Position numbers and translations under genes: made by a program
The notes under the pieces: generated by a model
What the model was told of the DNA's origin: nothing
The model's database searches: none
What the model saw: only the letters and a program-made list of their open reading frames with translations
Shown here: piece by piece, positions 12,224 to 36,831 of the stretch
How the letters are laid out: every line of letters starts with the position of its first letter
Position numbering within the stretch: position 1 is the first letter of the stretch
Virus record (IMG/VR): IMGVR_UViG_3300044213_000107
Coordinates: 1 to 64,000 of that record
Direction: 5' to 3' (one strand)
DNA: 64,000 nt

Positions 12224-12951
12224 TTGGTTTGTGCAGGAATAATATATGTGTATACACACAGACCTGAATCGACTTCAATCTCTGCAGCACCTTGATCGCT
12301 AAAGCGCATCTTTTTATCACCAGATAGTGCAAGAATATTCATAACAACTGCAACGGGCCAGTTCCATGATTTTGCAATAGTTCCAGCAACATTGCTTTCA
12401 AATGTAAAGTTGCCTGAATGGTTTGCAGGATCACCAAAGTAAAACTTTAAACTACCGTTTTCTGTTTTGGCTGTAAACGTAGTTTCTTCACTGTTTGCAC
12501 TTGCTTGCAAACGCAAACGCTGAATACCGTTTACGCTCGGCGTAAAGTCTACACCCCACTTAACCTGGGCCATGGTAAATGATTTTAGTTTATCATTTAC
12601 TACTTCTGCACTCATGTATCGGTAATCATTTTTAAAGTCACCGGCTTGATTTTCGAAATGAACTCCAACAGGAACATCTACCCCATCTTTATTTTGTAGA
12701 GTTGGAGTAATAGTTGCATTTTCTTTGTATTCTGGAATGTTAAGGATGGTAGTTAATTTTCCTAGATTAGGCATACCAAATGTACCAACAAACTCGGGCA
12801 CTGGATTGGCAAACTTTGCTTTTAAAATAACACTGCGATCTTCGGCAATAGCCGAAATCACAGTTTCAGTATCTGATCCAACAACTTTAACAAGGTCAAT
12901 ACAACCAAGGCGATGCGTATGCTCAACGATATCTAATAGATAATCTTTCAT
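12220..12951 (-). CDS. Probable DNA polymerase sliding clamp (gp45-like)
   Basis: Size, beta-rich two-domain pattern, C-terminal Y.YII.A, near the polymerase; clamp loader also in window. Confidence 0.6.
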   Translation of the reverse strand: MKDYLLDIVEHTHRLGCIDLVKVVGSDTETVISAIAEDRSVILKAKFANPVPEFVGTFGMPNLGKLTTILNIPEYKENATITPTLQNKDGVDVPVGVHFENQAGDFKNDYRYMSAEVVNDKLKSFTMAQVKWGVDFTPSVNGIQRLRLQASANSEETTFTAKTENGSLKFYFGDPANHSGNFTFESNVAGTIAKSWNWPVAVVMNILALSGDKKMRFSDQGAAEIEVDSGLCVYTYIIPAQTK

Positions 12952-13978: not shown

Positions 13979-13986
13979 TATTTATT
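13979..13986 (-). promoter_or_regulatory. T4-like late promoter (AATAAATA)
   Basis: Matches the TAAATA consensus found before many genes; overlaps polymerase stop codon. Confidence 0.55.
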
Positions 13987-16642
13987 CGAAGGTAAACAGT
14001 TGATCAAAAGTTGTTTTTATATCTGTGTGTCCGGGAATATCCCAATCAAGTACACCAAGTAAGTTTTCTACTTTTTGATTTACAATGCCCATTTCCATTA
14101 GATCATCATCAAATGGCAGCTCTTTAAACCAAGCAGGAATATGCGACTCGTCTGTGGGATAGCCAACTGATGTGTATCCTAGTGGATTATCTTTAAGTTT
14201 ACACACAATTGTTTTCATACCATCCACAATCTGCATACTATAGTTGTCGCCGTACATGCGGCGCAGATTATTCCAGTTCATTGCAGCACGCACGTGTCCA
14301 GGCATGTTGGCTTTGCCCAAACGCTGTTCTTCGGCAGTATATTTTGTTAGATTGTTTACACGCTTTGGAGTACCTTTTTCCCAAGCAGGTCTGTCAGCAA
14401 ATGCTATTTTAAATTCACGTACTTTATCATAGATCTGTTCCTTTTCGGCACCAGTCAAGACATCTAACAAGATTTCACTTAAGAATTCCTGCACAATCTT
14501 TGGAGTGTCTGACCGCTTTAGGTCCAAGCCCATGGCTTTTACTTTACCAGGCTTACCACTTTTGTCTTGACGATTGCCTTCTAGATCATAAATCAGCACT
14601 GCATAACGTTTCTTTTTAATAAACAAACTCTTACTTGCAACAAGTTCACGACCGCCTCGAATAATAGCACCCATTTCTCGGGGACAATGACAAGCACGTT
14701 CCATGAATGCCGGAAATGATTCATTTACACTATCAGCAATGGCATCATACATCTGTATGCAAACGTCTTTGTTCCACTCTAAGGTACCCGCTTCAACTTC
14801 CGTTTTAATTGCCGGCCATGCGGAGAAGTAGACAGAATCCGTGTCACCGTAGATGACAGCCTGGCCAACATGATCGTAAGTGCCCGTGATTGCTTCATTG
14901 ACGTGCGAGTCCATATGTTTTGCGATAATGCGGCCTGTAAGCGTTGTACTTTGCCCAATACGTTGATCAAAGAACCTGCACCCGGGGTTAAGGATAGCGC
15001 CGTATAAGGAGTTAAGGTTAATTTTTTTGACGAGTTGTCTTTTATCCCAGAACGCAATGTCTTCAGCAGTTTCTGCGGTCTTCTTTTTTGCTTGCATTTC
15101 TTTTCGTTCTGCATACCATCTCTCCAATAAACCTGGGATTATTCCCTTCATGTCATACTTAAAAATTGTTCCGTTGGCACTAAGTGTCCAAGGCTCTCGC
15201 CCTTCAAAGATTAATCGCCATACATCGGCGGCACTAAGCACATCACTGCCACCAGATTCCCAGTCTATGGTAATTTCTGTGCCGGCTTCTAAATTCATTA
15301 CTGCTTGGTATTCTAAACTACCAAACATGTTTTCCCAGGCATCGGCAAAACTTGCACCGGCGTCCATCTTTTCTTTAATATAGTGGTCAGTCATTACCGG
15401 GCGGAGTTGCCCAACGACTGTTTCTGGTCCCATGTTAAGGGCTCGAATAGCCGAGGGGTAGAGACTGTTGATGTCAATGGCGCCGACCCATTCGTGCATT
15501 CCTTTTTTGGGATAAGCAACATAGGCACCTGCGGCTTGCGTGTTTTCTTTGTCATCTCGGTTTTTCCTATTAGGTACAATCATACCACGTTGATGTGCTT
15601 CATTGATAATAGCTTGTTCTGTAACTGCAACTGCACCCATTGTAGTTGCTAACAGCACAGTATTATCATGTGCAATTTCGTTTGCAAGGTCGATAAAACG
15701 TAGTTTCTTATCAAACTTTGCAATCAACATGGTATCTTGTCGGTTATAGTCAATGAACTTAGGAAAGTCTCGATTATACAATTGATCAAGAGTGCCTTCG
15801 TAGGCAACTTTGCGTTCATCCAGTTCATATTCGCCGATAGCGTCTAGGCTATAACTGTGTCGTTCTTCATATGTGTATTTACGATATAACTGCATATAGT
15901 CCATATGAACACGACCTATTAGGTCAAAGGTTATATTTTCTGCACCAAACCGTTCAAAGGTACGTTGTTTTGGATATTGTCCCCATAAACACATTCTACG
16001 TGTGTCGTCTTTGCTTAACACACGAGTAATGCGCATTGTGGTATATGGAATATCAAAACCTTCTGAGTTCCATCCGCTTAAAATATCTGCATCGTCGATC
16101 AAGTCAAGGAAGGTGTTAAGCATATCCTCTTCACGTTCGAACAAAAAGCAGTTTTCAAATTTACTACAAATTTCTTCGGCGGATTCCCGGGAATAACTCT
16201 TCGGCGGTATAACCAGGGTGACTAATTTATCCATCCAGTCAAGGTACACAGAAATAGCAGTAATTGGATTAAACGGATCTTCAGGTTTAGAATACCCACG
16301 CTCGGGGTCAAAGTCGACCTCAATATCAAAAAACGCTGTATGTAATTTTGGTGAAGTAGCACCCAAGTAGTTGGTTTCTAAACAACGAAAGATAGGATTG
16401 ATGTCAGACTCCCACAAACGTGTACCCGACATTACTTTTAATTCTTTGTGATATTCTTTTGAATTTCTTGTGTTGAATCTTGACACAGGAGTGTCAAAGA
16501 TTGTTCTAAACTTACCGCGAGGATCATCATAGTAAAATATATAATCCGCCGGATATTCGCGATACTCTCTTTGGCCGTTTACACGTTCAACAACGTGAAT
16601 ACGATCCTTTTGACGATCATAGAGTGCATCAACATACGACAC
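13982..16642 (-). CDS. Family B DNA polymerase (gp43-like) with 3'-5' exonuclease
   Basis: FDIEV, GWNSEGFD, YNRQD; DINSLYPS, KINLNSLYG, YGDTDS, KKRY. Confidence 0.97.
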   Translation of the reverse strand: MSYVDALYDRQKDRIHVVERVNGQREYREYPADYIFYYDDPRGKFRTIFDTPVSRFNTRNSKEYHKELKVMSGTRLWESDINPIFRCLETNYLGATSPKLHTAFFDIEVDFDPERGYSKPEDPFNPITAISVYLDWMDKLVTLVIPPKSYSRESAEEICSKFENCFLFEREEDMLNTFLDLIDDADILSGWNSEGFDIPYTTMRITRVLSKDDTRRMCLWGQYPKQRTFERFGAENITFDLIGRVHMDYMQLYRKYTYEERHSYSLDAIGEYELDERKVAYEGTLDQLYNRDFPKFIDYNRQDTMLIAKFDKKLRFIDLANEIAHDNTVLLATTMGAVAVTEQAIINEAHQRGMIVPNRKNRDDKENTQAAGAYVAYPKKGMHEWVGAIDINSLYPSAIRALNMGPETVVGQLRPVMTDHYIKEKMDAGASFADAWENMFGSLEYQAVMNLEAGTEITIDWESGGSDVLSAADVWRLIFEGREPWTLSANGTIFKYDMKGIIPGLLERWYAERKEMQAKKKTAETAEDIAFWDKRQLVKKINLNSLYGAILNPGCRFFDQRIGQSTTLTGRIIAKHMDSHVNEAITGTYDHVGQAVIYGDTDSVYFSAWPAIKTEVEAGTLEWNKDVCIQMYDAIADSVNESFPAFMERACHCPREMGAIIRGGRELVASKSLFIKKKRYAVLIYDLEGNRQDKSGKPGKVKAMGLDLKRSDTPKIVQEFLSEILLDVLTGAEKEQIYDKVREFKIAFADRPAWEKGTPKRVNNLTKYTAEEQRLGKANMPGHVRAAMNWNNLRRMYGDNYSMQIVDGMKTIVCKLKDNPLGYTSVGYPTDESHIPAWFKELPFDDDLMEMGIVNQKVENLLGVLDWDIPGHTDIKTTFDQLFTFE

Positions 16643-16662
16643 TAAAATTACTCCTTTTGTTA

Positions 16663-17931
16663 TTAGTAATAGATACTATAAATTTTCTTAACATCTAAAT
16701 CTGGATGAAAGCGTTGTACTTGGTCTAAACAAAAATGTATTATAGCATAATCATCTGCAAATTTACTAGAGCGTGTTAGTTCTTTCATATAACTATGGGC
16801 AAATCTAATTTTTTCATAGTCTGATCCAGTGAAGTCGCAGTCTAAATTATCGGCAACTTGATCTGCGACTGATTGCGGAACGCTGGCAATACCAAAGTTA
16901 ATGTCTGCGTGCCAGACTAAATTTGGTTCAGCAATACTGAAACGATTTTTGGGATAACGCTTAACCAAGTACCGCCAGAAATCCATAACATGATGAAAGT
17001 TTAAACTTGTAAGTGTAGTAATTACATTTACCTTAACTGACTTACCTAGCAGTTGTTGTTCTAGTTGCCATGCCATGAGTAAATCAACATTAGATTCTAT
17101 GCTAGGCCAATCACTTGGTGTTCTTTGGATGTAGGCTATTTCGTCCATGCCATCTAGGCTTAGATTAAGTTCTATAGTTTGATATTTGCTCAGAGTATCA
17201 AGCAAGCGACGATTAATATTTGTACAGTTGGTACTGGGCCAAACTTTTATCTGTTGACTGTATCCTAGTTCTACTAGTCGTTCTAAAAAATCTATGTTTT
17301 CTTTAACCAGTGTGGGTTCGCCACCTGTGATAAACAAACTGCGAATACTGTTATAATGGTCTGCAAATACCCGTTCTAGTCCAATTGACACGGGCCAATC
17401 AAACACAGTATTAAAATCTGTGTCGTGATTAAGTGGTGGAATGATACCTGGAACAAATGTTAGTTCCTGTGGTGTGTCGACAAAGCGTTTAAAAAACTTA
17501 CCAAAGTTTGTGCTAAATGCAGGATTACACATTTTGCATGCAAGGTTGCAAAGATTCCCTGAACTAACTTGAAAGTCAAATGCTAACTTAGATAAGCGAC
17601 CATTATTTTCTTTGGCTTCTGTGATACGGTCTTGTATAGATTCAACGGGAATTCTATTTAATGTTTTAAGTCGTAGACTATTGCCGGCGGCAGCTTCTTG
17701 TTCCCAACACACACGACATGCTTCGGGCTTTTCTCCGACAATTAAACTTTGTCTAAGGCTTTGTAGCCGATCACTGTTCCAAGCTTCTGTTAGTGTGTGC
17801 GTTGCAATGTTGTAGACATCACCGTTGGCATCCGTGTGCTCGCCGCTTATTGCCGCACAACAATATTTTATTTCACCGTTGGGTTCGATGTCAGTGTGTG
17901 CAAACGGATAAGGACAAATCGTTGAACTCAT
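16663..17931 (-). CDS. Radical SAM protein (Twitch/SPASM-like)
   Basis: CNLACKMC, TGGEPT, SLDG; N-terminal CPYPF..CC..CRVC. Confidence 0.9.
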   Translation of the reverse strand: MSSTICPYPFAHTDIEPNGEIKYCCAAISGEHTDANGDVYNIATHTLTEAWNSDRLQSLRQSLIVGEKPEACRVCWEQEAAAGNSLRLKTLNRIPVESIQDRITEAKENNGRLSKLAFDFQVSSGNLCNLACKMCNPAFSTNFGKFFKRFVDTPQELTFVPGIIPPLNHDTDFNTVFDWPVSIGLERVFADHYNSIRSLFITGGEPTLVKENIDFLERLVELGYSQQIKVWPSTNCTNINRRLLDTLSKYQTIELNLSLDGMDEIAYIQRTPSDWPSIESNVDLLMAWQLEQQLLGKSVKVNVITTLTSLNFHHVMDFWRYLVKRYPKNRFSIAEPNLVWHADINFGIASVPQSVADQVADNLDCDFTGSDYEKIRFAHSYMKELTRSSKFADDYAIIHFCLDQVQRFHPDLDVKKIYSIYY

Positions 17932-18239
17932 TCTAATGCGTGTATGATTAATTTAATTAGGCCAACCATGTCAATGCAGAACAATAGCGCATAGTTAGCC
18001 AGCATGCCAAAACTGCCCCGAGTCCAGGCGGCCCAGGCATACACTAGAGTACTGGCTACCCATATGCAATACAATTGCAATAGTGGTGGATTAGGCAAGA
18101 ATATTGTCATGCCTAATGCACATCCTACGCTACCAAACCAACCTGCGATTTCTAAACAAAATCGCAGAGGCCACTCACGGTAGTCTCTGCGTGCCCAATC
18201 AAGAGTATTATTGTACCATGACGAAATGGTTTGTTTCAC
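17928..18239 (-). CDS. Small three-TM membrane protein
   Basis: Three hydrophobic segments. Confidence 0.65.
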   Translation of the reverse strand: MKQTISSWYNNTLDWARRDYREWPLRFCLEIAGWFGSVGCALGMTIFLPNPPLLQLYCIWVASTLVYAWAAWTRGSFGMLANYALLFCIDMVGLIKLIIHALE

Positions 18240-18496
18240 AGGGTTTTACCTACAGTTTCTAAAATAGTATTTAGATCTTCGTGATCCCTATTTGTCTCGC
18301 CAAGTTTGGCTTTGTGAGCAATACGAATTGCTTTTTTTAGCACAGCAGGCTTAACTTCTAACTCTTCGGCCACTGCTTTGATAGTGTCATTTAACCCTGC
18401 GGTAAGGTCTTCAACTTCACGCATTACCTGCATACCTTCGTTGATGATTTGAGTTAATTTTGCTTTTTGTTCACTTCCAAACATTAATGATGCCAT
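18236..18496 (-). CDS. T4 DsbA-like dsDNA-binding protein/transcriptional regulator
   Basis: KLTQIINEG...IKAVAEELEVKPAVLKKAIRIAHK pattern; 86 aa. Confidence 0.6.
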   Translation of the reverse strand: MASLMFGSEQKAKLTQIINEGMQVMREVEDLTAGLNDTIKAVAEELEVKPAVLKKAIRIAHKAKLGETNRDHEDLNTILETVGKTL

Positions 18497-18532
18497 ATAT
18501 TTCCTTTGTTTTTATGTTGAATAAATATTTTT

Positions 18533-19888
18533 ATGAATATCAATCACAATCAAGTTGCTGTCGTATTGTACGATAACATACTACCCCAATACAAGAGTGT
18601 TAGAGCAAACTTACACGATTTTACTGAATTTAAACTAAATGGTAAACAACAATTTACTATTTTTGAAACAGAAAATGTATCCGATACTTTAACTGAACTC
18701 ACCGATCGAGAATTTGATTGGGCAGTTGTTATTGCAATTGGTACATACCTGCAAGGACAACATACTGTATTTAATACTTTGGATTTTGTCACAAATGAAA
18801 ATAGTCCACTATGTTGTCATATTATAAACAAGAACAACTGTTTTTATATGGATAGCCAATATTTTGCCATAGATTTAAAAACATACAAACAATTAGGTTG
18901 TCCTAGATTCGAAGAAACTGATAACACACAAATTGAAATTCCTGACATTCTAAGAAGTACAGATAATGTACACGATGATTATACTCCGTGGTGGATCAAA
19001 CCCGGTAATGGAACAAAACAACAGTATTCGGGTATGGGCCACTTTGGAATTCAAGCGGTATCAACATATATAGATGCTGGATATCAAATTGTTAACATTC
19101 CGCAATCGGTTCGTAGTCAAAAGAATTATAGTTATCCAAATTGGAATTACAATGATCTAGTAAATTTAATTGCAGATCCCAAATATGCAGTTCCGGAAAA
19201 CACAGGATTATTTTGGTTTAATCGGGATCTGAAAGTATTAACAAATAGTTTGAATCATGGCTATTATGTTATAAACACAGAAACTTTTTCTCGCAGTCCA
19301 CGTTCGGATAAAACACCATTGGATGTATTCATTGGTGTGTGCGGAGGATTTAAACCTGCATGCATAGTAGGTAAAGATAATTTTAGTGAAGATACAAAAG
19401 TATATCTTTATGATATTAGTCAAGCTGCAATTGATTGGCAACGATATTTAAAAACAAATTGGGACGGCGACCTAGACAAATTTGAATCTACGTTCAATTC
19501 TTTTCAGTCACAAAACCCAACTTACATGCCATTGTATTATGCTCATGAACCAATGAAAATAAACATAGATTGGTTTTTACAATCAGCAAACTTATCCGCA
19601 GAAGAATTCACCGCTCGTTGGCAAAAATATTTAAAAATGCCAACGGAGTTTATAAATCTAAATTTATTAGACAATGATGCAGTTGATCAATTAATTGCAA
19701 TATCTAAGAATTGCTCAAAAGGTGCTTACATATGGACCAGTAATGCATTTTTTATGGATTATATAATGTTCTTTAAATCTCGTGCCTGGACAAATCAAAA
19801 ACAACAAGATTTTATCAATGAACTAACATCAAAGGCCACTAAAACTATAGTGTTGGAAAACTGTGGTCAATTGACATTTATCAAGTAG
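18533..19888 (+). CDS. Hypothetical protein (possible nucleotide-sugar or SAM-binding enzyme)
   Basis: 451-aa ORF, AATAAATA late promoter at 18520-18527. Confidence 0.7.
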   Translation: MNINHNQVAVVLYDNILPQYKSVRANLHDFTEFKLNGKQQFTIFETENVSDTLTELTDREFDWAVVIAIGTYLQGQHTVFNTLDFVTNENSPLCCHIINKNNCFYMDSQYFAIDLKTYKQLGCPRFEETDNTQIEIPDILRSTDNVHDDYTPWWIKPGNGTKQQYSGMGHFGIQAVSTYIDAGYQIVNIPQSVRSQKNYSYPNWNYNDLVNLIADPKYAVPENTGLFWFNRDLKVLTNSLNHGYYVINTETFSRSPRSDKTPLDVFIGVCGGFKPACIVGKDNFSEDTKVYLYDISQAAIDWQRYLKTNWDGDLDKFESTFNSFQSQNPTYMPLYYAHEPMKINIDWFLQSANLSAEEFTARWQKYLKMPTEFINLNLLDNDAVDQLIAISKNCSKGAYIWTSNAFFMDYIMFFKSRAWTNQKQQDFINELTSKATKTIVLENCGQLTFIK

Positions 19889-20549
19889 CGTGTATTAGTA
19901 TTACGTCTTTGTGATCAACGACGTTATATTTTCGCCAGTTACTACTTGCATGCACGTATGTGCGATCAAACATACCCAATGAACCTAATTCATAGTTGTA
20001 TATGCCATCTAGTTCTAGGTAATTACAGATAATGCGATTACCTAATACACAGTGGTCAACATCATCGGCATGGCTAAGCTCGGGCAATTGTTGACCTTGT
20101 TCTAATTGAGTATTAATTTCTAGCAGTCCTGCTATTAATTCTTCGTTTGTAAAAAATTCTTGTTTCCAAACTATAGTTTTAAAAATATTGTTGGTATTTT
20201 CATATAGTGGAATTATACAACTTTTACCTATTTGTTTAGCATTTCTGTCGCCAGGTTCGTCAACATGTATCGAATGTGGAAGAATTTGTCTTTGATAAGC
20301 AACATATAATTGCACATGTTGTTTCATTAGAGATCTAAATGTTTTTTCTATGATTTTAAATGCACGATCAGAATGATCTAATACAACTCTTAAATCTAAT
20401 ACATCTGTGTCTACATTGTAGATTTGTTTGGCTTTTTCTCTATCATATGGTCTACTAGTAACACGGTCTGTGGCGAACTTTTCTGCCATGTCAGATCTAA
20501 GCCATTCTATTTGTTCTAGCGTTAAAAAATTTTTAAAACTCTCAACCAT
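19881..20549 (-). CDS. 2OG-Fe(II) oxygenase-like protein
   Basis: H-V-D ... FDR.YVH.S metal-triad pattern. Confidence 0.55.
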   Translation of the reverse strand: MVESFKNFLTLEQIEWLRSDMAEKFATDRVTSRPYDREKAKQIYNVDTDVLDLRVVLDHSDRAFKIIEKTFRSLMKQHVQLYVAYQRQILPHSIHVDEPGDRNAKQIGKSCIIPLYENTNNIFKTIVWKQEFFTNEELIAGLLEINTQLEQGQQLPELSHADDVDHCVLGNRIICNYLELDGIYNYELGSLGMFDRTYVHASSNWRKYNVVDHKDVILIHAT

Positions 20550-21252
20550 TTTGCGCTTTCTTATAACTGTCTAATACTAGTCGGTTCCAATTGGGGTTTT
20601 TAGGTTCGCCGTGTACTATTATATGATACCGAGGGATATCACTATCGTTGTATACTGCATGTGTAATCCCATTGTCAAATAAAAATACACTACCGGTATT
20701 TTTAAATGGTAAACATCCGTCTGTGGTAACCATATTACAACCTTCAGGATGATTTAAACTTATATTAACGGCTGCATGCAAATGCCTTCTTTGATTGTCT
20801 CGATGTGGAGTGATATATCCTCCGGGTTCTAACAACATATATCGTAGTCTATGATATTTGGTGTAGGGAAAGATATTTTTAAAATAGTTTACTGTAACAG
20901 GACAACGATCTTGAATTTCTGTCCAGGTATAAGGTGCAGTATCCCAGGTCATTCCGTAACTTTCTGCACTACCAGTGTGTGTTGCACTTATTCCGTGAAC
21001 ACATAAACTATGCCAGCCTTGATGACTATTTTCGTCACCACGATGTTCAACGAACAGTTCTCTGAGATTTTTAGCCTCCTCTAGCATTTCTGTATATGGA
21101 GCATCGATTAATAATTCTAGCCATGGAGCCATTGATTTTGTATACACCCATTCTGTTTGTTCCCACCAATTGGCAATATCTTCGGGAATATGCGGATACG
21201 TGAATGTATTGTTTTTATTTTCGTCTACAAATTTTTGTGCGGCCGGGTGCAT
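20542..21252 (-). CDS. Aspartyl/asparaginyl beta-hydroxylase-like 2OG-Fe(II) oxygenase
   Basis: LRYMLLEPGGYITPHRD, FD...HAVYN.S..PRYHII; start revised to MHPAAQ after AAGGA. Confidence 0.85.
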   Translation of the reverse strand: MHPAAQKFVDENKNNTFTYPHIPEDIANWWEQTEWVYTKSMAPWLELLIDAPYTEMLEEAKNLRELFVEHRGDENSHQGWHSLCVHGISATHTGSAESYGMTWDTAPYTWTEIQDRCPVTVNYFKNIFPYTKYHRLRYMLLEPGGYITPHRDNQRRHLHAAVNISLNHPEGCNMVTTDGCLPFKNTGSVFLFDNGITHAVYNDSDIPRYHIIVHGEPKNPNWNRLVLDSYKKAQNG

Positions 21253-21265
21253 AGTTAAATCCTTG

Positions 21266-21360
21266 GTGCTCACTTTCGGGATGTTTGGGCACGACTCCTA
21301 CTAATCCCGGGCCAGCAGCCGGCCCACACCTCCGTTACGAATAACGGGTCCTAAGGGTGT
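21266..21360 (-). ncRNA. Structured GC-rich RNA candidate (multi-stem, possible pseudoknot), unassigned
   Basis: ACACC/GGUGU closing CCGUUA-UUCG-UAACGG; GGGCCGG-CUG-CUGGCCC; GGGAU...AUCCC; 3' GUGAGCA can pair with UGCU. Confidence 0.65.
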
Positions 21361-22502
21361 TTTAGTAGCTGATACGCTTCGGGAAATGTATCGGCAAAAT
21401 TCTCTTTACGTAGGGAATCATACCCATCGGTAACACGTTTAAATTCTTGTAATAACTCCGGCGAATTATCGACACCCATCTCAAGCTGTGGAATCAAATG
21501 TTTCACAGCAGTATTGGTTAATTTATTTTTAACAGCTTGTTTCATTGAATCAGGTGCTATACGCATATTTAAGTGCAATGGTCTATGCAGTATATTAAAT
21601 CCACATGTTATTCCACGTTGGTTAAAGTACTGCCATATATCACTGGCATAATATATATTTAACAAACTTACAGTAACACATACACTTAAAACAACATTTG
21701 GATTTTCTGCAGCTAACTGTTGATATTTTGATAAGTTAACTTCAATCTCTGACCATTTTGCAGGATAACGCATATACTCAAATTGTTTGCCAATGCCATC
21801 CATGCTAATACCTATATCAACACTACGAAACTTTTTAAAAATTTCATAGTAATCATCTCTCCATACGGTTCCGTTAGTGTTTATGTGTATATCTACCGTA
21901 TCGGCTAAAGGCAGTTGGCTTGCAGCAGCAAGTAGTGACCAAAGAGGTTCAATTAGCAACGGCTCGGCGCCGTACAGGTCATAATAAACTATATCTTGAG
22001 CCCATTGATTTAATGTAGCCCAGGTTGCACTATCATCGGCAAAACTTTGTTGCGCACCACGAAACTGTTCTAGATAAACGGGATACGATGTTTCATCCGC
22101 TTCCACATGATAGTAATCACGAATCCAACGACTGCTCGTATGAGGGTTACAGTGCCTACAAGCAAGGTTGCACAAATTACCGGGCTTGAGCATAATAACA
22201 CGAGGATGGTCCGTAGGTATAACATTGGCAAACTGTTCATTACTTAATAACCTTTTACTGCGCCTTCCGGCTGCTTCTTCGTCCCAGCAGTCTTGGCAGT
22301 TGTGATGTTGCTGATTTGATTTTAATGCACTGGCAATTTCTTGTCTTGTGGGACTCGCCCATGCGTCTTCTAGCGTATGTTGATCAAGTCGAATAAGTGA
22401 TTGATCGTGATGTTGAAACCAAACACGACTTTGATTACACATTGATGCATAGCCACCATTTTGTGTACTTAGTCCTAGATCGGCTAACACACAATAGGTC
22501 AT
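21351..22502 (-). CDS. Radical SAM protein (Twitch/SPASM-like)
   Basis: CNLACRHC, GAEPL, INTNG, SMDG; start revised to MTYC. Confidence 0.9.
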   Translation of the reverse strand: MTYCVLADLGLSTQNGGYASMCNQSRVWFQHHDQSLIRLDQHTLEDAWASPTRQEIASALKSNQQHHNCQDCWDEEAAGRRSKRLLSNEQFANVIPTDHPRVIMLKPGNLCNLACRHCNPHTSSRWIRDYYHVEADETSYPVYLEQFRGAQQSFADDSATWATLNQWAQDIVYYDLYGAEPLLIEPLWSLLAAASQLPLADTVDIHINTNGTVWRDDYYEIFKKFRSVDIGISMDGIGKQFEYMRYPAKWSEIEVNLSKYQQLAAENPNVVLSVCVTVSLLNIYYASDIWQYFNQRGITCGFNILHRPLHLNMRIAPDSMKQAVKNKLTNTAVKHLIPQLEMGVDNSPELLQEFKRVTDGYDSLRKENFADTFPEAYQLLKHP

Positions 22503-23635
22503 TGAAATTCGGGCCAAAGATCGGCAAATTTTAGTGGACTATCGGGCCAGTATGTGTGTTCTTGTTCTGCATGCCAATCGTATAAGGTTTGAGTTTCTGC
22601 ATCGGGATTGTTGGCCTTAACTAAATTAGCAGCTTGCTCTTTAAAAAATTCTGCGGACTGTGGATTATATTTGATACTTTTAATTAATTCTCGTGCAGAT
22701 TGTTGCATAAATTTGTTAGGCAAACTAAATGCACTCAATCTATGTGGATGTGTTAGTTCTGCCCAACGTATTGGTGGCAGTTGGTTGTCTGCAAAATATT
22801 CATGTATGCTGCTAATATCTAAACAATTATACACACTAAACTGACCAGTTACATTAACACTTTGATGTGGTGCAGCATCTTTTAATGTTTGTATGTTGTG
22901 CAGCATCAACTGCCAGTCTGCCCCATGCCGCACATATTCAAAACGATCTTCTATGGTTTCAAAACTTATATCCCAGGTAACATTGTCAAGCTCGGTTAGT
23001 CTACGAAATATTTTATTTTTTTCTAATGGAACACTAAGATTGGTTATTACATTTATGTGTACTGAATTGTCAATGACATCTAGTAGTAGTTCGTTTTCTT
23101 TTTGTAACAACGGCTCACCACCAAGTAGTCCTAGATTTTTAATTGTGCTGCGATGCTGAACAATATAATCCATTATGCCTTGGATGTCAGCATAGTCTGC
23201 ACGTTCAAGTGGGTGTCCTTTTAATTGAGCCCAAATACTGCTAGCTTCTGACCCACAGTATACACAACTTAAATTACAGGTATTTGACCAACGAATGTCG
23301 AGATTTTGTAGTGGTTGATCTTTTAAACTAACAATAGGTATAGTTCGACGTTCGGCAATATCGTTATACCATGTGCGTTCTGTTACAGGAGTGTGTCGTT
23401 CGCGATCAATGCAAATGCGGCAATTATCATGTTCTTGATTATTAACAATAGCTGTTTTAATTTCATCTAGTAGACTATTGTTAATTGCAGAATCTAAACT
23501 AACTTCTCGCAGATTTCCCAATTCTGTTTGGCCAGCACAACAGGTCTTATAAACACCCAACGGGTTTATATGTATATTTGTCCAAGGAGCATAGCAAAAG
23601 TTTGACCCAATATCCGGGGTTAAATTGATTGTCAT
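22499..23635 (-). CDS. Radical SAM protein (Twitch/SPASM-like)
   Basis: CNLSCVYC, GGEPL; CYAPW..CC..CRIC. Confidence 0.9.
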   Translation of the reverse strand: MTINLTPDIGSNFCYAPWTNIHINPLGVYKTCCAGQTELGNLREVSLDSAINNSLLDEIKTAIVNNQEHDNCRICIDRERHTPVTERTWYNDIAERRTIPIVSLKDQPLQNLDIRWSNTCNLSCVYCGSEASSIWAQLKGHPLERADYADIQGIMDYIVQHRSTIKNLGLLGGEPLLQKENELLLDVIDNSVHINVITNLSVPLEKNKIFRRLTELDNVTWDISFETIEDRFEYVRHGADWQLMLHNIQTLKDAAPHQSVNVTGQFSVYNCLDISSIHEYFADNQLPPIRWAELTHPHRLSAFSLPNKFMQQSARELIKSIKYNPQSAEFFKEQAANLVKANNPDAETQTLYDWHAEQEHTYWPDSPLKFADLWPEFQ

Positions 23636-24361: not shown

Positions 24362-26254
24362 TTACTTTTTTGTGTACTGCTTACGCAATAGTACCTTAAT
24401 AAGATTTTGAACCCTAGGATCAGTAGGTGGCAACATAGTCTTTTCAACGTGCCAATAACCTAGAGTTTTATCTTCCCAGCTGCCAAATTTGACAATTTTG
24501 TTGACTCCTGGGCCAAACTGTGCCTGTGCCATAGCACCCAGAGATTTGACAGAATCTGGTACAAAAGTCATGGTGTAGAATTTATTGACATTTTGACCAT
24601 CAAGTTTAGCTCGAAATTCTTGATTTTGTACTCGAGATACTATGCGAGTTTTGGCCTGAGCATCGCCGGCCTGTATCGAAGAAGCCGTCAACTTGATACC
24701 ATTGTTTTCCAAACCTGCTTTGGCCACTTTGTCAACATCAGATCGACCAGTATACACACTGGCCGTGATCATGGGCGCACCCTTGGTACGCACAAAATCC
24801 AGCACTCGTTCTATGGCAGTGTTTTTTTGTATTTGATCAGTATCAGGGCCTTGCATTAACTTAGCCAACTTGGACTGATACTCTTGACGATAAGCAGCAG
24901 GATCGCTGGCTATGATCATGGCACGCACAAAACGTCCTATCACATTGTACACACCCTGAAAGTCCTGTAGATAGTTGCCACCAGCATGTCTAAAACTAAT
25001 ATACTTGCCGTTGTTGCTGATACTACTGGTATGGCTGCCAGTGGCATTGTTGGCTATGCTCTGCAACATTTTCAAATCTGTATCTTTATTGACTGCGTTC
25101 TTTACCAGGTGTCCCTGCGCACTGCGGGCATAGTCATTGTGCTCGCGACCAAAGTATTTGAGCACATATTGGTCGCCCAGAAATACTGCCAATTTTAACA
25201 AATCCAGTTTCTGCGGAATACTGACATTGATGTGTAGGCCAGTGGTTTTGTTGGTATACAGTCCCTGTTGCTGAGCCAAGGCATAGAAATTCTTGACAGC
25301 ATCTATGGCTTCGGCCACCGGCAAGGGCGGACTCACTATTTCGGCACTGGCATCTTCGTCTTTGTCAGCAGTCAAACTGCCGTCGGGCTCGATGTACCAG
25401 TTTTTTAAATTTTTGTCTTCTTGATGATAGCTGTCAAACACAGTGACCTTGCGTCCCATGACAGACTGTATTATGGGTTTGAGTGCATCGGCCGCTTTTC
25501 TATAGAGTCGGTCATCGTCATCATCGTAGTCATCATCGGCGTAATCTTTGAGATTTAATTCTGCCCATACTGCCGAAGGAGAGTATTGAAAAAATCGGCT
25601 GGTGTGACGGTCTATACCCATGCTAGCACCAGTCAACCATGACAAAAATCCATTCCAGCTTGATGAGTCATCAACGGTACGAACTATCTCTGATCCTACA
25701 GCAAATATTTTTGATTTGTTGTAGTCTGCATACACATATCGACCAAACAGTCTTGCGAATCGCATCTGATCCTGTAGGCTGGTACTGTCAAAGGAAAAAT
25801 CAGGTTTGCTGTCGCGCATCAGCTTTAGAGCTTTTTTGGCACATTTTTCTTTTACATCATCAGGCAGCTTGTTGTAGAGTTCTATGATTTTTGGCAGGTG
25901 GCCCGAATACCAGACTTGATAAGCCTCATTAGCAGTACGGAATCCGCGATAGGGTCTTTTGAATTTGAACAAGGAGTCAAACCATTTGGTAGAAAGTACC
26001 ACACCGTTTTCAAAAGTTGAGCCAACGTTGTTGTCCCAAACATTGGCATAGTACATGGCATCATCTGCTTGCTTGGCAGTGATCGTGGCATCATCTGATG
26101 TTTTTTGAAATACAGCCGGGGGCACATGCACTTCAAATTCAAATCCGATTAATACACCAGCACCCTGCCCTTGCTCAATGGCGTTAGCAAAAGCACTAGG
26201 ATTCATTGGTGCTTCAACAACGCTGCGTGATTCAATGATGTCTTTTATATACAT
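24362..26254 (-). CDS. Putative amidoligase (COOH-NH2 ligase) with capsid-targeting-like N-terminus
   Basis: GFEFE, IEPDGSL, EIVSPP, TGLHINVS, ISFR..GG; N-terminus MYIKDIIES. Confidence 0.8.
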   Translation of the reverse strand: MYIKDIIESRSVVEAPMNPSAFANAIEQGQGAGVLIGFEFEVHVPPAVFQKTSDDATITAKQADDAMYYANVWDNNVGSTFENGVVLSTKWFDSLFKFKRPYRGFRTANEAYQVWYSGHLPKIIELYNKLPDDVKEKCAKKALKLMRDSKPDFSFDSTSLQDQMRFARLFGRYVYADYNKSKIFAVGSEIVRTVDDSSSWNGFLSWLTGASMGIDRHTSRFFQYSPSAVWAELNLKDYADDDYDDDDDRLYRKAADALKPIIQSVMGRKVTVFDSYHQEDKNLKNWYIEPDGSLTADKDEDASAEIVSPPLPVAEAIDAVKNFYALAQQQGLYTNKTTGLHINVSIPQKLDLLKLAVFLGDQYVLKYFGREHNDYARSAQGHLVKNAVNKDTDLKMLQSIANNATGSHTSSISNNGKYISFRHAGGNYLQDFQGVYNVIGRFVRAMIIASDPAAYRQEYQSKLAKLMQGPDTDQIQKNTAIERVLDFVRTKGAPMITASVYTGRSDVDKVAKAGLENNGIKLTASSIQAGDAQAKTRIVSRVQNQEFRAKLDGQNVNKFYTMTFVPDSVKSLGAMAQAQFGPGVNKIVKFGSWEDKTLGYWHVEKTMLPPTDPRVQNLIKVLLRKQYTKK

Positions 26255-28228: not shown

Positions 28229-31207
28229 TTATACCTCATATCCTGCTTGACGCATTTCTAACAACATACTATCAAGTAAGGAATCATAATCTTCTTTAAT
28301 GTGTCCACCTACAGGACTGGTGCTGTCTACTGCCACCGGCATGTTGCTGTCTTCTGTTTGTCGAGCAGGTCTGCAATCAAGTATAGTAGCATTATGTCGT
28401 TCTGCCCAATCACGTGCGGCAGATTCACTGCTAAACACTCGTGTTGCTAATACACGTTGATCTCTACGATTATACACATAATAACGACATTCTACTGCGG
28501 TGTTTTCGGCCAAATGCCATGCCGCTTGGTCCGCATCATGATCTGGTCTTACTGCTTTATTTTTTTGTACTTCGGCAGCACCTAGTCCTAGTTTGGCTCG
28601 ACGCTTTTTTTCTGCCATTTGTGTTTCGTAGTCTTTTATGCCGTGATAAACTTCACCGTGTGGTGGTTGCAAAGGACGATCCTTTGACACTAGATTTTTA
28701 ACATCAGAGTAGTTTATTTTTGGTTTCTTTTTAGGACTTTGAAATCCGAAGATACTTTCTTGTTCAATGTCTTCGTGCCATTGATTGTTGCTGCCGGCCC
28801 AAGCATCTCCTTGATCGCTATGCCATTGGTTGTCAGCGCCTGTCCATGCATCTTCGTCTACACTTTGCTCACGAATAAAATCGTCATCGCCGTAGTGTAA
28901 TTCCCAAGGCTCAATAAAATCATCGTCATCACGTTGTCTTGGTGCTATACCAGTGCCATGACATACTCTGCAACTGGTATTATCAGTAAGTCCTTCGCCA
29001 GTGCCACGACATGTATAACACTCGTTATCAGCATCTTCTGGGCCTTCGGACACTTTTGCTACTGGTGGTTTTTGCTTGGCTATCTCTAATTCATTTGTTG
29101 TAACAACTTTAAATTGTGCGCCGCCACCGCGTGCCAATAGTGTTTTAATTTTATCTGCGGAACCATAGTTATCACCGGCAACTACAACAGTTCCATCGGG
29201 TTGGATTTGTTTTATAACTCTAGTAACAAAAGCATGATCTGTATTAGGATACTGTTTTTGCACTGCCGCTAGTCCACGTTGCAATGCTTGTGAGGCTTGT
29301 TGCATTTGTGGAGTTTGCTGACTATCTTCCGCCACACCTTGCTTACCTCCATGGACGGCATTTAATAATAATTGGTATAGTGCTTTTTTAGCAAGATCAA
29401 ATGATGGGAATACTTGTTTGTTTTTTGTACTTCTGTTTACGTAAATTTTGTATACATTACCTTGTTTTACTAAACGATATTCGTTTCCATTTATTGTTTT
29501 AAGGAATAATAACTTAATATGTGCGGATGGATCATCTGATATTGTAAACTCACCTTCCGCCAATTGTTTACCGGTCAAAGTTATAGTTTTATCCGGATTC
29601 ATTCTAATAATTCTGTCGTTTAATAAACTTGTATAAACATGACGTTGTGCAGGTGTAATACCATTTCTATCTATCTTAAAAGGCAGATTATGATTTTCTG
29701 CTGTTTCAATGGCCTTTATTAATAATATTTTACCATGTCCCAACCCTCTGACGTCGGAATGTATCATGGCATCATTCTCTACATCATTTGTTTCAGGGAA
29801 ATATTGATAGGCAAAAAATCCTGCTTCTCTACCGTCTACGGCCAGTTCAACTTCAAATGATGTTTCGTAGTTATCTCTTGAGAATATGTTAAAAGATGGT
29901 TGTGATTGTTCTGAGCCTTCCGCCACACCTTCTTTGTATGTAACAGGATCAGTTTGTTTTAAAAATTCGTCAGGATCAAAATCTTTTACACTATAGGATT
30001 CGATATAGTCTTTATAATTTGATAATTTTTTAATTATCTCGGGGGAATTGTTAATCCACATAGCACGAGGAACATCTAATACAGTATATTGTCCTTCTGA
30101 CATTAATTTTATATTGTTATAATGTTCAGGAATCCCTGGCATAAATGTAGTAAAATATTTTAATAAACTCATTAGTGATGTATAATTTTTATACAAAGGA
30201 TCTGTTTTGGAAGTAGTAGACATTGACACCGCGGTTGCAATAGCAGGCATTATTGGACCATTTGGGGCAATAACCTCATCGATTAATTGCTGACGCAAAT
30301 TCTCTTTAATTTTTGCATCTTCAGAATTAGTAGTATTTTGATTACTAGTATTATTTTTTGACGGGTTCACTGTAGATTTTTGTGATGCCGGTTCCGTAGG
30401 ATTGATATTATTTTGCCATGAACTTCTAGTATTTTTTTGTTGAAAATTATCTTTTGATTGAACATATTTTTTAATGTAATCGTATACGGCCTCTGCTCCA
30501 GAAAATGCTGCAGTCGCTATTCCTATACTTGCTAAATCGATACCTACTTTCTTTAAAAAATTTCTACGATTGTTATTAGGTGACTGGTTGGGTTGTGCTT
30601 TAGGCGGCTCTTGCGAAGCACGCTCTGCATTCACTGCGTCCAATATTTCTTTTTCGGTAATGTTGTACTTACGCATCAATGCCGATAATTGTCTTTTCAA
30701 TAAATCTGTTTCGTGCTGAGGTTTATTATGACTATTTTGTATTTCTTTATATAATTGAATACAACTATTTAACGCCCCATCTCTTGTACCAGCCTCCGCT
30801 ACACCTTGTAAACTCTTGCGAATAGCAGCAGAAGTTTTATCAATCTGCTTACCAGTGGCCCGCATTACATTGCCCATACGGTCTGTGGCTTGGCGGTGCT
30901 TGCCAGCAGCAGCAAGTTCGTCTGCAGACTTTCGAGCCTTTTGTTTATAACTAGACAATGTGTCTGAACTTAGTTCGTCAACTATTTCATCTTGGCTTTC
31001 ATCTGCAGGTCTTGTATAAACTTGTTGTACATTTTTTGGATCTTTATCAAGGATTACATTCGGCAATGGTGCATTTTTATCTTTTGCAAAATGCTGGCGC
31101 ATGTCTGCAACGCTAGGTGTTGGTTTAGGTGCAGGTTTTTTAGCAGGCTGAAAATGAAAAATTCCTTCTACAGATTTTTCTTTTTCAAATAAATCGCTGA
31201 TAAACAT
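28229..31207 (-). CDS. 992-aa modular polyprotein, putative internal head protein (includes a GNAT module, DnaJ-type Zn finger, Tat-like segment)
   Basis: MFISDLFE N-terminus; modules joined by QGVAEA/EGVAEG/QLAEG/QGVAED/KVSEG; RGLGHGK acetyl-CoA motif; CYTCRGTG/CRVCHGTG. Confidence 0.7.
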   Translation of the reverse strand: MFISDLFEKEKSVEGIFHFQPAKKPAPKPTPSVADMRQHFAKDKNAPLPNVILDKDPKNVQQVYTRPADESQDEIVDELSSDTLSSYKQKARKSADELAAAGKHRQATDRMGNVMRATGKQIDKTSAAIRKSLQGVAEAGTRDGALNSCIQLYKEIQNSHNKPQHETDLLKRQLSALMRKYNITEKEILDAVNAERASQEPPKAQPNQSPNNNRRNFLKKVGIDLASIGIATAAFSGAEAVYDYIKKYVQSKDNFQQKNTRSSWQNNINPTEPASQKSTVNPSKNNTSNQNTTNSEDAKIKENLRQQLIDEVIAPNGPIMPAIATAVSMSTTSKTDPLYKNYTSLMSLLKYFTTFMPGIPEHYNNIKLMSEGQYTVLDVPRAMWINNSPEIIKKLSNYKDYIESYSVKDFDPDEFLKQTDPVTYKEGVAEGSEQSQPSFNIFSRDNYETSFEVELAVDGREAGFFAYQYFPETNDVENDAMIHSDVRGLGHGKILLIKAIETAENHNLPFKIDRNGITPAQRHVYTSLLNDRIIRMNPDKTITLTGKQLAEGEFTISDDPSAHIKLLFLKTINGNEYRLVKQGNVYKIYVNRSTKNKQVFPSFDLAKKALYQLLLNAVHGGKQGVAEDSQQTPQMQQASQALQRGLAAVQKQYPNTDHAFVTRVIKQIQPDGTVVVAGDNYGSADKIKTLLARGGGAQFKVVTTNELEIAKQKPPVAKVSEGPEDADNECYTCRGTGEGLTDNTSCRVCHGTGIAPRQRDDDDFIEPWELHYGDDDFIREQSVDEDAWTGADNQWHSDQGDAWAGSNNQWHEDIEQESIFGFQSPKKKPKINYSDVKNLVSKDRPLQPPHGEVYHGIKDYETQMAEKKRRAKLGLGAAEVQKNKAVRPDHDADQAAWHLAENTAVECRYYVYNRRDQRVLATRVFSSESAARDWAERHNATILDCRPARQTEDSNMPVAVDSTSPVGGHIKEDYDSLLDSMLLEMRQAGYEV
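29326..29340 (-). repeat. GVAE repeat copy 1 (AAGGTGTGGCGGAAG)
   Basis: Exact 15-bp match to copies 2, 4 and 5. Confidence 0.9.
29913..29932 (-). repeat. GVAE repeat copy 2 (GAAGGTGTGGCGGAAGGCTC)
   Basis: 20 bp identical to 32790-32809. Confidence 0.9.
30792..30808 (-). repeat. GVAE repeat copy 3, degenerate (CAAGGTGTAGCGGAGGC)
   Basis: Near match encoding QGVAEA. Confidence 0.75.
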
Positions 31208-32631
31208 TATTTCATTGCTCCTGCAGATTTAACCAAGTTTGCTAATTGTTGTCCTTGGGGACCTTGTAAAATTTTACCTAGTGCTGGCGCCATTTTACTT
31301 ATAGCAGCTTGATCAGCGGTGCTCATAGGTGCACCTGTTTCGGCTTTTTGTAATGCTGGTCCAGTTTTAGCTGGATCTACATCAACACCGGCAGTTTTTA
31401 GAACGCCAAGATTCTTTTGTTGTAATGCTTGTTGTTGTTGTAGTTTTGCAGCATCTTGAGGTTTGTTTGCACCACCAGCGGTTGTTTGTGCCATGGTTGT
31501 TTGTGCAGTGGGTGTGAGATCTTCTGCCATATCCTCATCCATGCTGCCTTTTAATAACCCTGCTTTTTCCATAGCTGCCGACGATTCGGGCCCTAACTTT
31601 TGTACACCACTAGCAACACCTTTAGCATTGATGGCAATATATGGAGCAGGTGTCCTTACCATTCCGTTGTTAGACACAATGTATGTGTTGTTTTGTGTAT
31701 CCAATACCGCTTTAACTGTTTGTCCAGCAAAAGGTACAGTAGTTAAAGTAAATCCATTGCCTAGATCTTGTTGTGCATGTGCACCTAGCGCACCCAATGC
31801 CATGGCCCCGCCAACAACTGCATCTTTCCAGCCTTCCGCCACACCTTCATTAGGCACACAGTTGTTTACACGCACACCACCTTTGATCTTTGTACCTTCT
31901 TTGTGCTTACCAGTCCAGCACTTGGGATCTAGGCGTGTTTTAATTTCGTTTACAGCTGCACCTGTGGGTACAGCACTTTCGCAATTCCACTTGCGTAGTG
32001 CTTTATTGATACGGCTATTTGGATCTCTCTTGGTCTTGGCTCCAGTACGATGTTTCTTCATACCTTTCATACGAGCACAAAAACTCTTACGACGCTTTGA
32101 GGCCTTTGAGCCTTTCTTTAACTTGCTGGGTTTGGTTGTGACTGCAGTTTGTAGTTTGCTACCAGGATGACTACGACGATAACTTGCTACACCTTTTTTA
32201 TTCAAGCCGCCATTTTTATTCTTACCTGATGACTTTTGCCAGGCTTCTGCTTCGGCTAATAATTCTTCATCATCACAGTCATCGAAATCTTCCCAGATTA
32301 GATCTGCGTCAACACCATTTTGTTCAGCAATTGACTCAATCATTTCTTCAATAATGTCAAACTGCGAATTTAACAATTGTTCTTCTACTAGTAGATCCGC
32401 CTGAAACTGTTGCCAAGCTTCACTGATTTCCCGATGAACATTTCGTTCTTTGCTGGTACGATCAAGTTCTGGTAGTACACTTTCGGCGGCACCAACAAGG
32501 CGACCTTTGAACGGATGTTGCTTACCACCAGTCTTGGCTTTTTCAGTTCCACGCACTTGATCGCCGGGTTTTTGTCCTACCGCTTGTCCGGCGAACTTAT
32601 CCATTGATTCTAATAGTTTACGCATGTCCAT
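31207..32631 (-). CDS. Modular polyprotein, putative internal head protein (basic AW..GKN..GGLN module, CW.G...NCV module, signal-peptide-like module)
   Basis: MDMRKLLES start; junctions LLAE, VNE, EGVAEG, MDEDMAED. Confidence 0.7.
   Translation of the reverse strand: MDMRKLLESMDKFAGQAVGQKPGDQVRGTEKAKTGGKQHPFKGRLVGAAESVLPELDRTSKERNVHREISEAWQQFQADLLVEEQLLNSQFDIIEEMIESIAEQNGVDADLIWEDFDDCDDEELLAEAEAWQKSSGKNKNGGLNKKGVASYRRSHPGSKLQTAVTTKPSKLKKGSKASKRRKSFCARMKGMKKHRTGAKTKRDPNSRINKALRKWNCESAVPTGAAVNEIKTRLDPKCWTGKHKEGTKIKGGVRVNNCVPNEGVAEGWKDAVVGGAMALGALGAHAQQDLGNGFTLTTVPFAGQTVKAVLDTQNNTYIVSNNGMVRTPAPYIAINAKGVASGVQKLGPESSAAMEKAGLLKGSMDEDMAEDLTPTAQTTMAQTTAGGANKPQDAAKLQQQQALQQKNLGVLKTAGVDVDPAKTGPALQKAETGAPMSTADQAAISKMAPALGKILQGPQGQQLANLVKSAGAMK
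31831..31848 (-). repeat. GVAE repeat copy 4 (GAAGGTGTGGCGGAAGGC)
   Basis: 18-bp exact match to copies 2 and 5. Confidence 0.9.
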
Positions 32632-32632
32632 A

Positions 32633-33130
32633 TTAATATACACCTTTTCCTACTTGCACCACCTGAGGTCTACGAATAACATTGCTGATCTTTTTTGGTT
32701 TTCCAGTTGGTGGTTTTCCACCTAATTCACCGACCACCGCACCAATGCTGGCTGCACCAGTTGCACCACCAGTTGCATCTTCTTTTAAGGAGCCTTCCGC
32801 CACACCTTCCTCTAACACAGCCGTTAATTGTTGTTGAGCTGACTCCATAGCAAACTCGGGCATGCCTTCGGCTTCTTGGCTTAATTGATCATACTCTAAA
32901 TATTCACGCACAGTTTTTAAATAGTCTGCAGCAATGCTGATCTTTTCACTGACCCATCCATCGAGCCCGTCTAGTTCTGATACTCGTTTTAATAGTTTGT
33001 GCAATTCAATTGCATCTTTTGCAGCGTGATAACATTCTTCACGAGCCATTTGTACTTCGTGGTCTTTGTGCATAGCATGTGCATCATCGCCGATAAATTC
33101 ATTTTCTACGATAAAATCTGTGGTTTTCAT
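32633..33130 (-). CDS. Putative internal head protein
   Basis: MKTTDFIVE closely resembles the T4 capsid-targeting sequence MKTYQEFIAE; contains EEGVAEG. Confidence 0.7.
   Translation of the reverse strand: MKTTDFIVENEFIGDDAHAMHKDHEVQMAREECYHAAKDAIELHKLLKRVSELDGLDGWVSEKISIAADYLKTVREYLEYDQLSQEAEGMPEFAMESAQQQLTAVLEEGVAEGSLKEDATGGATGAASIGAVVGELGGKPPTGKPKKISNVIRRPQVVQVGKGVY
32790..32809 (-). repeat. GVAE repeat copy 5 (GAAGGTGTGGCGGAAGGCTC)
   Basis: 20 bp identical to 29913-29932. Confidence 0.9.
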
Positions 33131-36114: not shown

Positions 36115-36831
36115 TTATTCAGGCCTATGCACCAGTTCATGAATTTTTCTCACAAACCCGGGACTAATAATAGACAAAAAAGTAGCTATCTTTTCATCGT
36201 TGGCATAAAAAAATGCGCCATAAAGATAATTAAAAATTTGAAATTGGCGTATGGTGCCTGCACTTAGTTTAACATCATCTTGTGAATTTAAATAGTTAAA
36301 AATCGATGATCTTACATCATCGGGATAATATCCATCTCTGATCATGAATTTAAATTTATACTCAGGTTTTTGTTTTCTAATAATTTTGTCGCTACTGAGT
36401 ATTTCTAAATCTTCGTTGTCTTTGGGCCATGTTACACTTTGGATTTTTGACTGTAGAGATTCGTTCATGGCAACAGCAACCTCTCGCAATACCTCTTGGT
36501 CTTCGGTATAAATCTGCACATAAGGATCTTCAATACGAATTTTTATTTTTGATCCAAACGAATCTTTAATGTCTCGAAGATTTTGTAGATCTGCAGAGGA
36601 AAATAAGTCAACATTTCTACGTGGACGCCAACTACCACCAAAATTATAATGCCGAATATTAAAAATCATAGCATCTAACTCGGCGGATATATTGCCAGTC
36701 CTAGCATCTGTTACTACACGACTGCCGTGCACTACTAGTTCCATGCGACAATAAAAACGATTGTAGTATCGTTTTTTTGTAAATAGGTAGTTAATGTTTT
36801 TATTGATCTTGCGCCAAAACGATGAAGCCAT
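36115..36831 (-). CDS. Hypothetical protein (start uncertain)
   Basis: ORF track. Confidence 0.6.
   Translation of the reverse strand: MASSFWRKINKNINYLFTKKRYYNRFYCRMELVVHGSRVVTDARTGNISAELDAMIFNIRHYNFGGSWRPRRNVDLFSSADLQNLRDIKDSFGSKIKIRIEDPYVQIYTEDQEVLREVAVAMNESLQSKIQSVTWPKDNEDLEILSSDKIIRKQKPEYKFKFMIRDGYYPDDVRSSIFNYLNSQDDVKLSAGTIRQFQIFNYLYGAFFYANDEKIATFLSIISPGFVRKIHELVHRPE

Follow-up and report, generated by a model that had tools for sequence, protein, structure and literature searches.

Several described kinds of structured element are close to the one considered here. Promoter-early stem-loop (PeSL) cassettes of T4-type phages occupy intergenic positions in hyperplastic regions of T4-superfamily genomes, where a simple terminator-like hairpin with no conserved loops is directly followed by a sigma70-type early promoter, and many copies per genome lie at the borders of inserted, deleted or swapped gene cassettes (PMC2839356, PMC4122927). 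The processive-antitermination RNAs HK022 put and Bacillus EAR are reported to be conserved multi-stem RNAs, with a pseudoknot in EAR, that lie after or between ORFs and not in a 5' leader, are single-copy, are co-oriented with a long downstream operon, and make RNA polymerase resistant to terminators (Irnov and Winkler 2010; King et al. 1996). Small self-cleaving ribozymes common in phage metagenomes (twister, pistol, hatchet, HDV-like and hammerhead) combine small size and a pseudoknotted fold with conserved unpaired nucleotides and an intercistronic location. [quoted passage not shown] 2023, PMC10690425).

The locus under study is a GC-rich spacer of 95 nt at 21360-21266 on the minus strand of a 64,000-nt window, which comprises the first 64 kb of the 260,723-bp IMG/VR virus record IMGVR_UViG_3300044213_000107. 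It resembles PeSLs in its intergenic position at the border of exchanged cassettes and, in about a third of family members, in being followed by a sigma70-type promoter, but it is single-copy and about 100 nt long, with three covarying stems, a pseudoknot and about 40 invariant nucleotides, and the window's copy has no promoter after it. It resembles put and EAR in its multi-stem fold, position after or between ORFs, copy number and orientation relative to a long operon, but has no sequence or model similarity to them in an Rfam scan at E<=10, and in the common arrangement the downstream operon has its own promoter. It resembles the small ribozymes in size, pseudoknotted fold, conserved unpaired nucleotides and phage intercistronic location, but has a different helix topology and matches no Rfam ribozyme model.

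The earlier note described a compact multi-stem RNA between a radical-SAM gene and a hydroxylase gene, and this observation is confirmed. In the P1 domain (21360-21326), ACACC (21360-21356) pairs with GGUGU (21330-21326) and encloses the sequence CUUAGGA and an optional hairpin, P1a, capped by UUCG (CCGUUA-UUCG-UAACGG, 21347-21332); the invariant block CCUUAGG spans 21356-21350. P2 (21325-21309), given in the note as GGGCCGG pairing with CUGGCCC, is a hairpin in which GGGC pairs with GCCC, a C-G pair closes the loop, and the loop is the invariant GGCUGCU (21320-21314). In the P3 domain (21308-21278), GGGAU (21308-21304) pairs with AUCCC (21282-21278) around GGAGUCGUGCC, and the domain encloses the invariant GGAGUCGUGCCC (21298-21287), whose triloop (P3a) is CGU (21293-21291). 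The 3' tail AAAGUGAGCAC (21276-21266) is followed by an AAGGA ribosome-binding site (21264-21260) and an ATG (21252-21250). The UAG stop codon of the upstream gene (21353-21351) is the UAG of CCUUAGG and so lies inside the element, as the note had stated. The GC content is 0.53-0.55, compared with about 0.30-0.45 in the flanks. The folding energy does not distinguish the element from shuffled sequence (z = -0.16 on the sense strand and -1.17 on the antisense strand), and a single-sequence fold would therefore not have shown it to be real; the case rests on comparison with relatives.

To determine whether the element belongs to a known class, the window was searched with Rfam 15, which gave no match at the gathering score, and the interval 21150-21460 was searched with permissive filters, which gave no match at E<=10. 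ARAGORN found no tRNA or tmRNA gene in the window, and the fold has no closing acceptor stem. No terminator-like site lies at 21250-21370, where the tail is followed by CCAAGGAUUUAACUAUG. The element is not repeated in the window or the genome, which rules out a MITE or REP-type repeat. An exact 22-mer of the window's P2 was not found in IMG/VR, the radical-SAM gene used as an anchor found no relatives in viral contigs, and blastn of the locus and of a consensus-like element against 50,697 GenBank phage records found nothing. Two pattern scans of one genome for each of 185,579 prokaryotic species gave no hits and then two hits, at 13 and 9 bits, in GC-rich MAGs, as chance predicts, so that a host-derived attP or a fragment of a host RNA gene is unlikely. 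A peptide-coding reading was rejected because indels are not in multiples of three, the stems covary and there is no conserved start codon. Literature searches did not find the family: those for the core sequence returned only unrelated siRNA and miRNA strings, and two 2026 preprints on intergenic elements do not describe it.

Homologues were first identified at hydroxylase loci. A locus whose hydroxylase is 66% identical (L016) has a homologous 100-nt spacer that shares GGAGUCGUGCC and GUGAGCAC and whose stems differ by compensatory changes, whereas a 97%-identical locus (L015) has a strongly divergent version. Two loci at 57-59% identity have the hydroxylase gene directly abutting the upstream gene with no spacer at all, and distant loci at 39-50% identity have no such spacer. 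A two-block pattern scan of IMG/VR returned 91 contigs, about 85 of them genuine, and a second pattern that left the P2 loop and tail free returned at least 120, adding about 100 new contigs. In total, at least 181 loci on IMG/VR phage contigs carry the element, representing about 150 distinct sequences. Four blocks are invariant: CCUUAGG, CGGCUGCUG, GGAGUCGUGCCC and AGUGAGC. CCUUAGG and CGGCUGCUG are invariant even though the first search pattern did not include them, the former in 54 of 54 sequences. P1a is absent from minimal members of about 80 nt, such as those at loci L044 and L080, and P3 varies from 4 to 10 bp; L116 is another minimal form, whereas L018 carries a major form.

To examine the fold, a covariance model was used to align 56 and then 99 members. 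The model scores the window's copy at 69.7 bits (E=1.6e-17, match spanning 21262-21369), and this is the only copy in the record. In the 99-sequence alignment, 89.6% of cells are standard pairs, compared with 34-45% when the 3' partners are slid; 28 of 32 pairs show changes on both sides; the covariation score is 0.39 against 0.04-0.08; and no shuffle out of 500 reaches the observed values. All five P1 pairs and all ten P3 pairs show compensatory changes, and the outer pairs of P2 are 99.5-100% paired with G-C to C-G swaps. Invariant G.U pairs would be C.A mismatches on the other strand, which identifies the gene-sense strand as the one that folds.

The tail forms a pseudoknot, but not with UGCU next to the ribosome-binding site, as the earlier note had proposed; its partner is GCU of the P2 loop (21319-21317), which pairs with AGC of the tail (21270-21268). 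This helix, PK1, is 99.5-99.7% paired with double changes at all three pairs: G-C changes to C-G four times and to A-U once, C-G changes to G-C three times, and U-A changes to C-G once. A register in which UGCU pairs with AGCA was rejected, since it fails in the GCCU/AGG variants, whereas GCU pairing with AGC holds. In L117 and L187, GGU in the loop is matched by ACC in the tail. The most divergent members carry quite different but still complementary loop and tail sequences: UGCCGCU with AGCGGCA at locus L140, ACCACU with AGUGGU at L164 and L203, GCUGU with ACAGC at L168, GCUAC with GUAGC at L166 and L178, and GACGCUC with GAGCGUC at L015. A second contact, PK2, may form between GUG of the tail (21273-21271) and the P3a triloop CGU. 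It is 98.7% paired, and two wobble pairs become Watson-Crick pairs when the tail changes to ACG, but the change is on one side only and PK2 remains tentative.

All genes around the element are on the minus strand. The upstream gene (21351-22517, 388 aa) encodes a twitch-domain radical-SAM protein (NF033640, 282 bits), and the downstream gene (20542-21252) encodes a PF05118 Asp/Asn/Pro hydroxylase. Automatic ORF calling starts the hydroxylase at a GTG (21273-21271) inside the RNA tail (GUGAGCAC), but the AAGGA site suggests that the ATG at 21252 is the likelier start, although the closest homologue was called 4 aa longer; annotation may therefore hide part of the element inside a CDS. The window holds four radical-SAM paralogues, all on the minus strand (16663-17931, 21351-22517, 22499-23635 and 43929-45164). 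NF033640 was scored only for 21351-22517 and 22499-23635 (220 bits), which are tandem and overlapping, while the other two match only the PHROG radical-SAM families (phrog_14086, phrog_1802). With the hydroxylase and an amidoligase-like protein (24362-26254) next to them, these genes look like a small-molecule or peptide modification island. Elsewhere in the window, four copies of a 22-nt motif (AGCCTTCCGCCACACCTTC..., 77-100% identity) at 29323-32812 lie inside or across the 992-aa and 478-aa ORFs (28229-31207 and 31207-32643) and probably encode a repeated peptide motif; the 478-aa protein matches several PHROGs of unknown function through one domain of about 100 aa. A 762-aa protein (36800-39088, minus strand) with two AAA+-like regions matches phrog_4871, annotated as ATP-dependent protease, at E=5.5e-240. 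The phage has a T4-type DNA polymerase (phrog_262) whose best isolates are the jumbo phages Phosso, Atu_ph07 and the PBECO4 type, at only 43-52% identity. CheckV completeness of this and related records (31-74% for 112-261 kb) implies genomes of about 350 kb, and the sequencing runs that hold the locus are all freshwater metagenomes, none of them an RNA run.

The element is single-copy in each of the six large phage records checked (112-261 kb). A same-strand ORF always ends 0-26 nt before it; in 8 of 60 contexts, including the window, the ORF ends at the conserved UAG, and in most others it stops 12-26 nt earlier. No conserved promoter lies between ORF and element: information content is about zero beyond -15, and only 2 of 141 upstream regions look promoter-like, suggesting that the RNA is the 3' extension of the upstream message. 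Downstream, among 145 unique contexts, a loose sigma70 pattern matches 47, of which about 40 are strong promoters (TTGCxx-N16/17-TATAAT) 8-18 nt after the tail and followed by an AGGAGA ribosome-binding site. In 12 of 145, a strong intrinsic terminator directly follows the tail and is followed, in the cases examined, by a convergent gene. Most of the rest have the ribosome-binding site and start codon of the next gene within about 8-40 nt, as in the window, where the only promoter-pattern match is weak and lies inside the hydroxylase coding sequence. The flanking gene families are diverse and occur in mixed combinations, and include radical-SAM proteins, hydroxylase, DesA desaturase, IscA, a TerC/YjbE protein, nucleases and proteins of unknown function; the commonest neighbouring proteins, of about 370 aa and about 215 aa, have no PDB, NCBIfam or PHROG annotation.

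Despite this diversity, the DNA polymerase gene lies downstream on the same strand in 77 of 77 loci where it is in range, at 0.4-10 kb and most often about 0.7 kb, within an operon encoding a regulator-like protein, a 102-aa protein and the polymerase. The regulator-like gene encodes a conserved 86-aa protein (phrog_12534, with a weaker match to phrog_639, 'transcriptional regulator'; for example L173:644-904 and L116:12690-12950 in two relatives), has its own near-consensus sigma70 promoter and AGGAGA ribosome-binding site, and heads the operon. It follows the element within 80-170 nt in 43 loci and further off in 41 more; it is the commonest immediate downstream neighbour and a candidate partner. 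In the window, the operon (13985-18610, minus strand) comprises a promoter-like CTCTTGTAT-N18-TACAAT (about 18597-18565), the regulator-like gene (18239-18496), the 102-aa gene (17946-18227; 52% identity by BLASTP), an inserted radical-SAM gene (16663-17931) and the DNA polymerase (13985-16642), and tblastn gave 73-80%, 53% and 84% identity to the genes that follow the element in relatives. The promoter-region sequence AACACTCTTG...TACAAT, which directly follows the element in relatives, is retained 2.7 kb further downstream in the window, indicating that a cassette of about 2.7 kb has been inserted between element and promoter. This cassette holds the hydroxylase gene, a 222-aa ORF and a 451-aa ORF (18533-19888) that has no family match and lies on the plus strand, opposite to all its neighbours, so that any read-through from the element would run antisense to it. 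Cassette variation is also seen in L116, where an S-adenosylmethionine decarboxylase-like gene (12337-12693; phrog_3125, E=3e-21) lies between the regulator gene and the polymerase.

In population data, contig depth rises two- to three-fold over 21304-21370, and contigs from other phages match only 21313-21361, the P1-P2 core, before running into unrelated sequence. Variant alleles of this very locus exist, with indels in P1/P1a in one metagenome run and an L015-type P2/P3 in another (contig at window 21323-21426). The L015 allele (L015:1-90), whose hydroxylase is 97% identical in protein, keeps P1 but has a different P2 loop, P3 and tail with its own 7-bp loop/tail complementarity, which looks like a recombinational swap with a breakpoint inside the element and not point-mutation drift.

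The sequence comparisons show a selected RNA fold, without a match in Rfam, that is co-transcribed with the upstream gene, as read from DNA sequence alone, and sits at a fixed boundary between a hypervariable island of auxiliary genes and an early replication operon in uncultured freshwater jumbo phages; the reality of the family and its fold is held with high confidence. Its mode of action, including any catalysis, ligand binding or effect on RNA polymerase, is inferred. Invariance of about 40 loop and junction nucleotides, while the stems vary freely, points to specific recognition or catalysis over generic hairpin stability. The favoured explanation, which is tentative, is a cis-acting boundary element whose compact fold, held together by the pseudoknot, would be a specific recognition or catalytic site; it would either be cut, by itself or by an RNase, to define the 3' end of the upstream message and the 5' end of what follows, or would modify the transcribing RNA polymerase as put and EAR do. 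Being conserved, it would also act as a point of homologous exchange where cassettes are swapped, as PeSLs do. Against this explanation, a single copy per 350-kb genome is odd for a general punctuation signal, and in about half the contexts, including the window, the next ribosome-binding site follows within 8-26 nt with no promoter, so that a strong terminator or cleavage activity would have to be compatible with expression of that gene. In the ancestral arrangement, moreover, the downstream operon has its own promoter, and polymerases starting there never transcribe the element. The inference rests on DNA contigs, which cannot show transcript ends, cleavage or abundance.

The same facts fit a stable trans-acting RNA cut out of the polycistronic early transcript, as T4 tRNAs and stable RNAs are, although this is less likely. 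Such an RNA would bind a host or phage protein or RNA, for example as a decoy or sponge, perhaps through its invariant CUUAGGA or GGAG loops; CUUAGGA may have the form of a tRNA-Leu(UAG) anticodon loop. The element behaves like a gene in its own right, being single-copy, strongly conserved in its loops, compactly folded and independent of its flanking genes, and in the 12 contexts with a terminator it is placed as a 3'-UTR-derived sRNA would be. However, it has no promoter of its own, which makes a free-standing sRNA unlikely, most copies lack a terminator, and no partner or target was identified. A new class of self-cleaving ribozyme, a sub-case of transcript processing, is more doubtful still. 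The size, pseudoknot, invariant junction and loop nucleotides, intercistronic location and tight 5' boundary at the upstream stop codon are consistent with it, and the element matches none of the known classes, but about 40 invariant positions is more than small ribozymes usually have, and it is single-copy and was not seen near other ribozymes.

The earlier note's interpretation, a novel cis-regulator, ribozyme or sRNA fitting no known tRNA, terminator, riboswitch or ribozyme, is partly supported: the RNA is conserved, structured and unmatched in Rfam, but control of the downstream hydroxylase is not supported. A riboswitch or other cis-regulator of the next gene is favoured by the aptamer-like core of four invariant blocks among covarying stems, by a start codon within 8-40 nt in about half of contexts, and by the many neighbouring genes that encode Fe- or O2-dependent enzymes (radical-SAM, hydroxylase, desaturase and IscA). 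It is very unlikely, however, given that the downstream genes fall into many unrelated clusters, a promoter or terminator intervenes in about 58 of 145 contexts, and two relatives have the same gene pair with no spacer. The sequence after the tail is not conserved, no alternative pairing with a ribosome-binding site or terminator was found, and an apparent complementarity between the tail and the -35 hexamer, considered as a switch, fails in members with TTGACT promoters. A role at the DNA level, as a PeSL-like recombination linker or a single-stranded priming or origin signal, is the least likely, since covariation preserving three helices and a pseudoknot together with invariant loops is not needed for homologous recombination, constant co-orientation with the upstream ORF points to transcription, and PeSLs occur in many copies, even though the flanking families are shuffled, a breakpoint lies inside the L015-type allele, about a third of copies have the PeSL layout and the element lies upstream of the DNA polymerase operon.

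The closest described concept is the PeSL cassette, and even if the element only defines an mRNA end, it would extend that idea from a simple hairpin to a complex folded RNA. Structured RNAs with this many invariant nucleotides and a covariation-supported pseudoknot have often turned out to be ribozymes, riboswitches or polymerase-binding RNAs, and this family, abundant in freshwater viromes and with a well-defined alignment, is a ready candidate for experiment. It is possible, though unlikely on present evidence, that it founds a new functional class of phage RNA, either a self-cleaving ribozyme or an RNA acting directly on the transcribing host RNA polymerase, which jumbo phages would use to set the boundary between a shuffled accessory-gene island and their replication operon. 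The element is a fixed landmark next to the DNA polymerase operon around which auxiliary genes for radical-SAM enzymes, hydroxylase, desaturase and Fe-S assembly are inserted and exchanged, and it therefore provides a handle for studying how jumbo phages organise early transcription and how their hypervariable islands are built.
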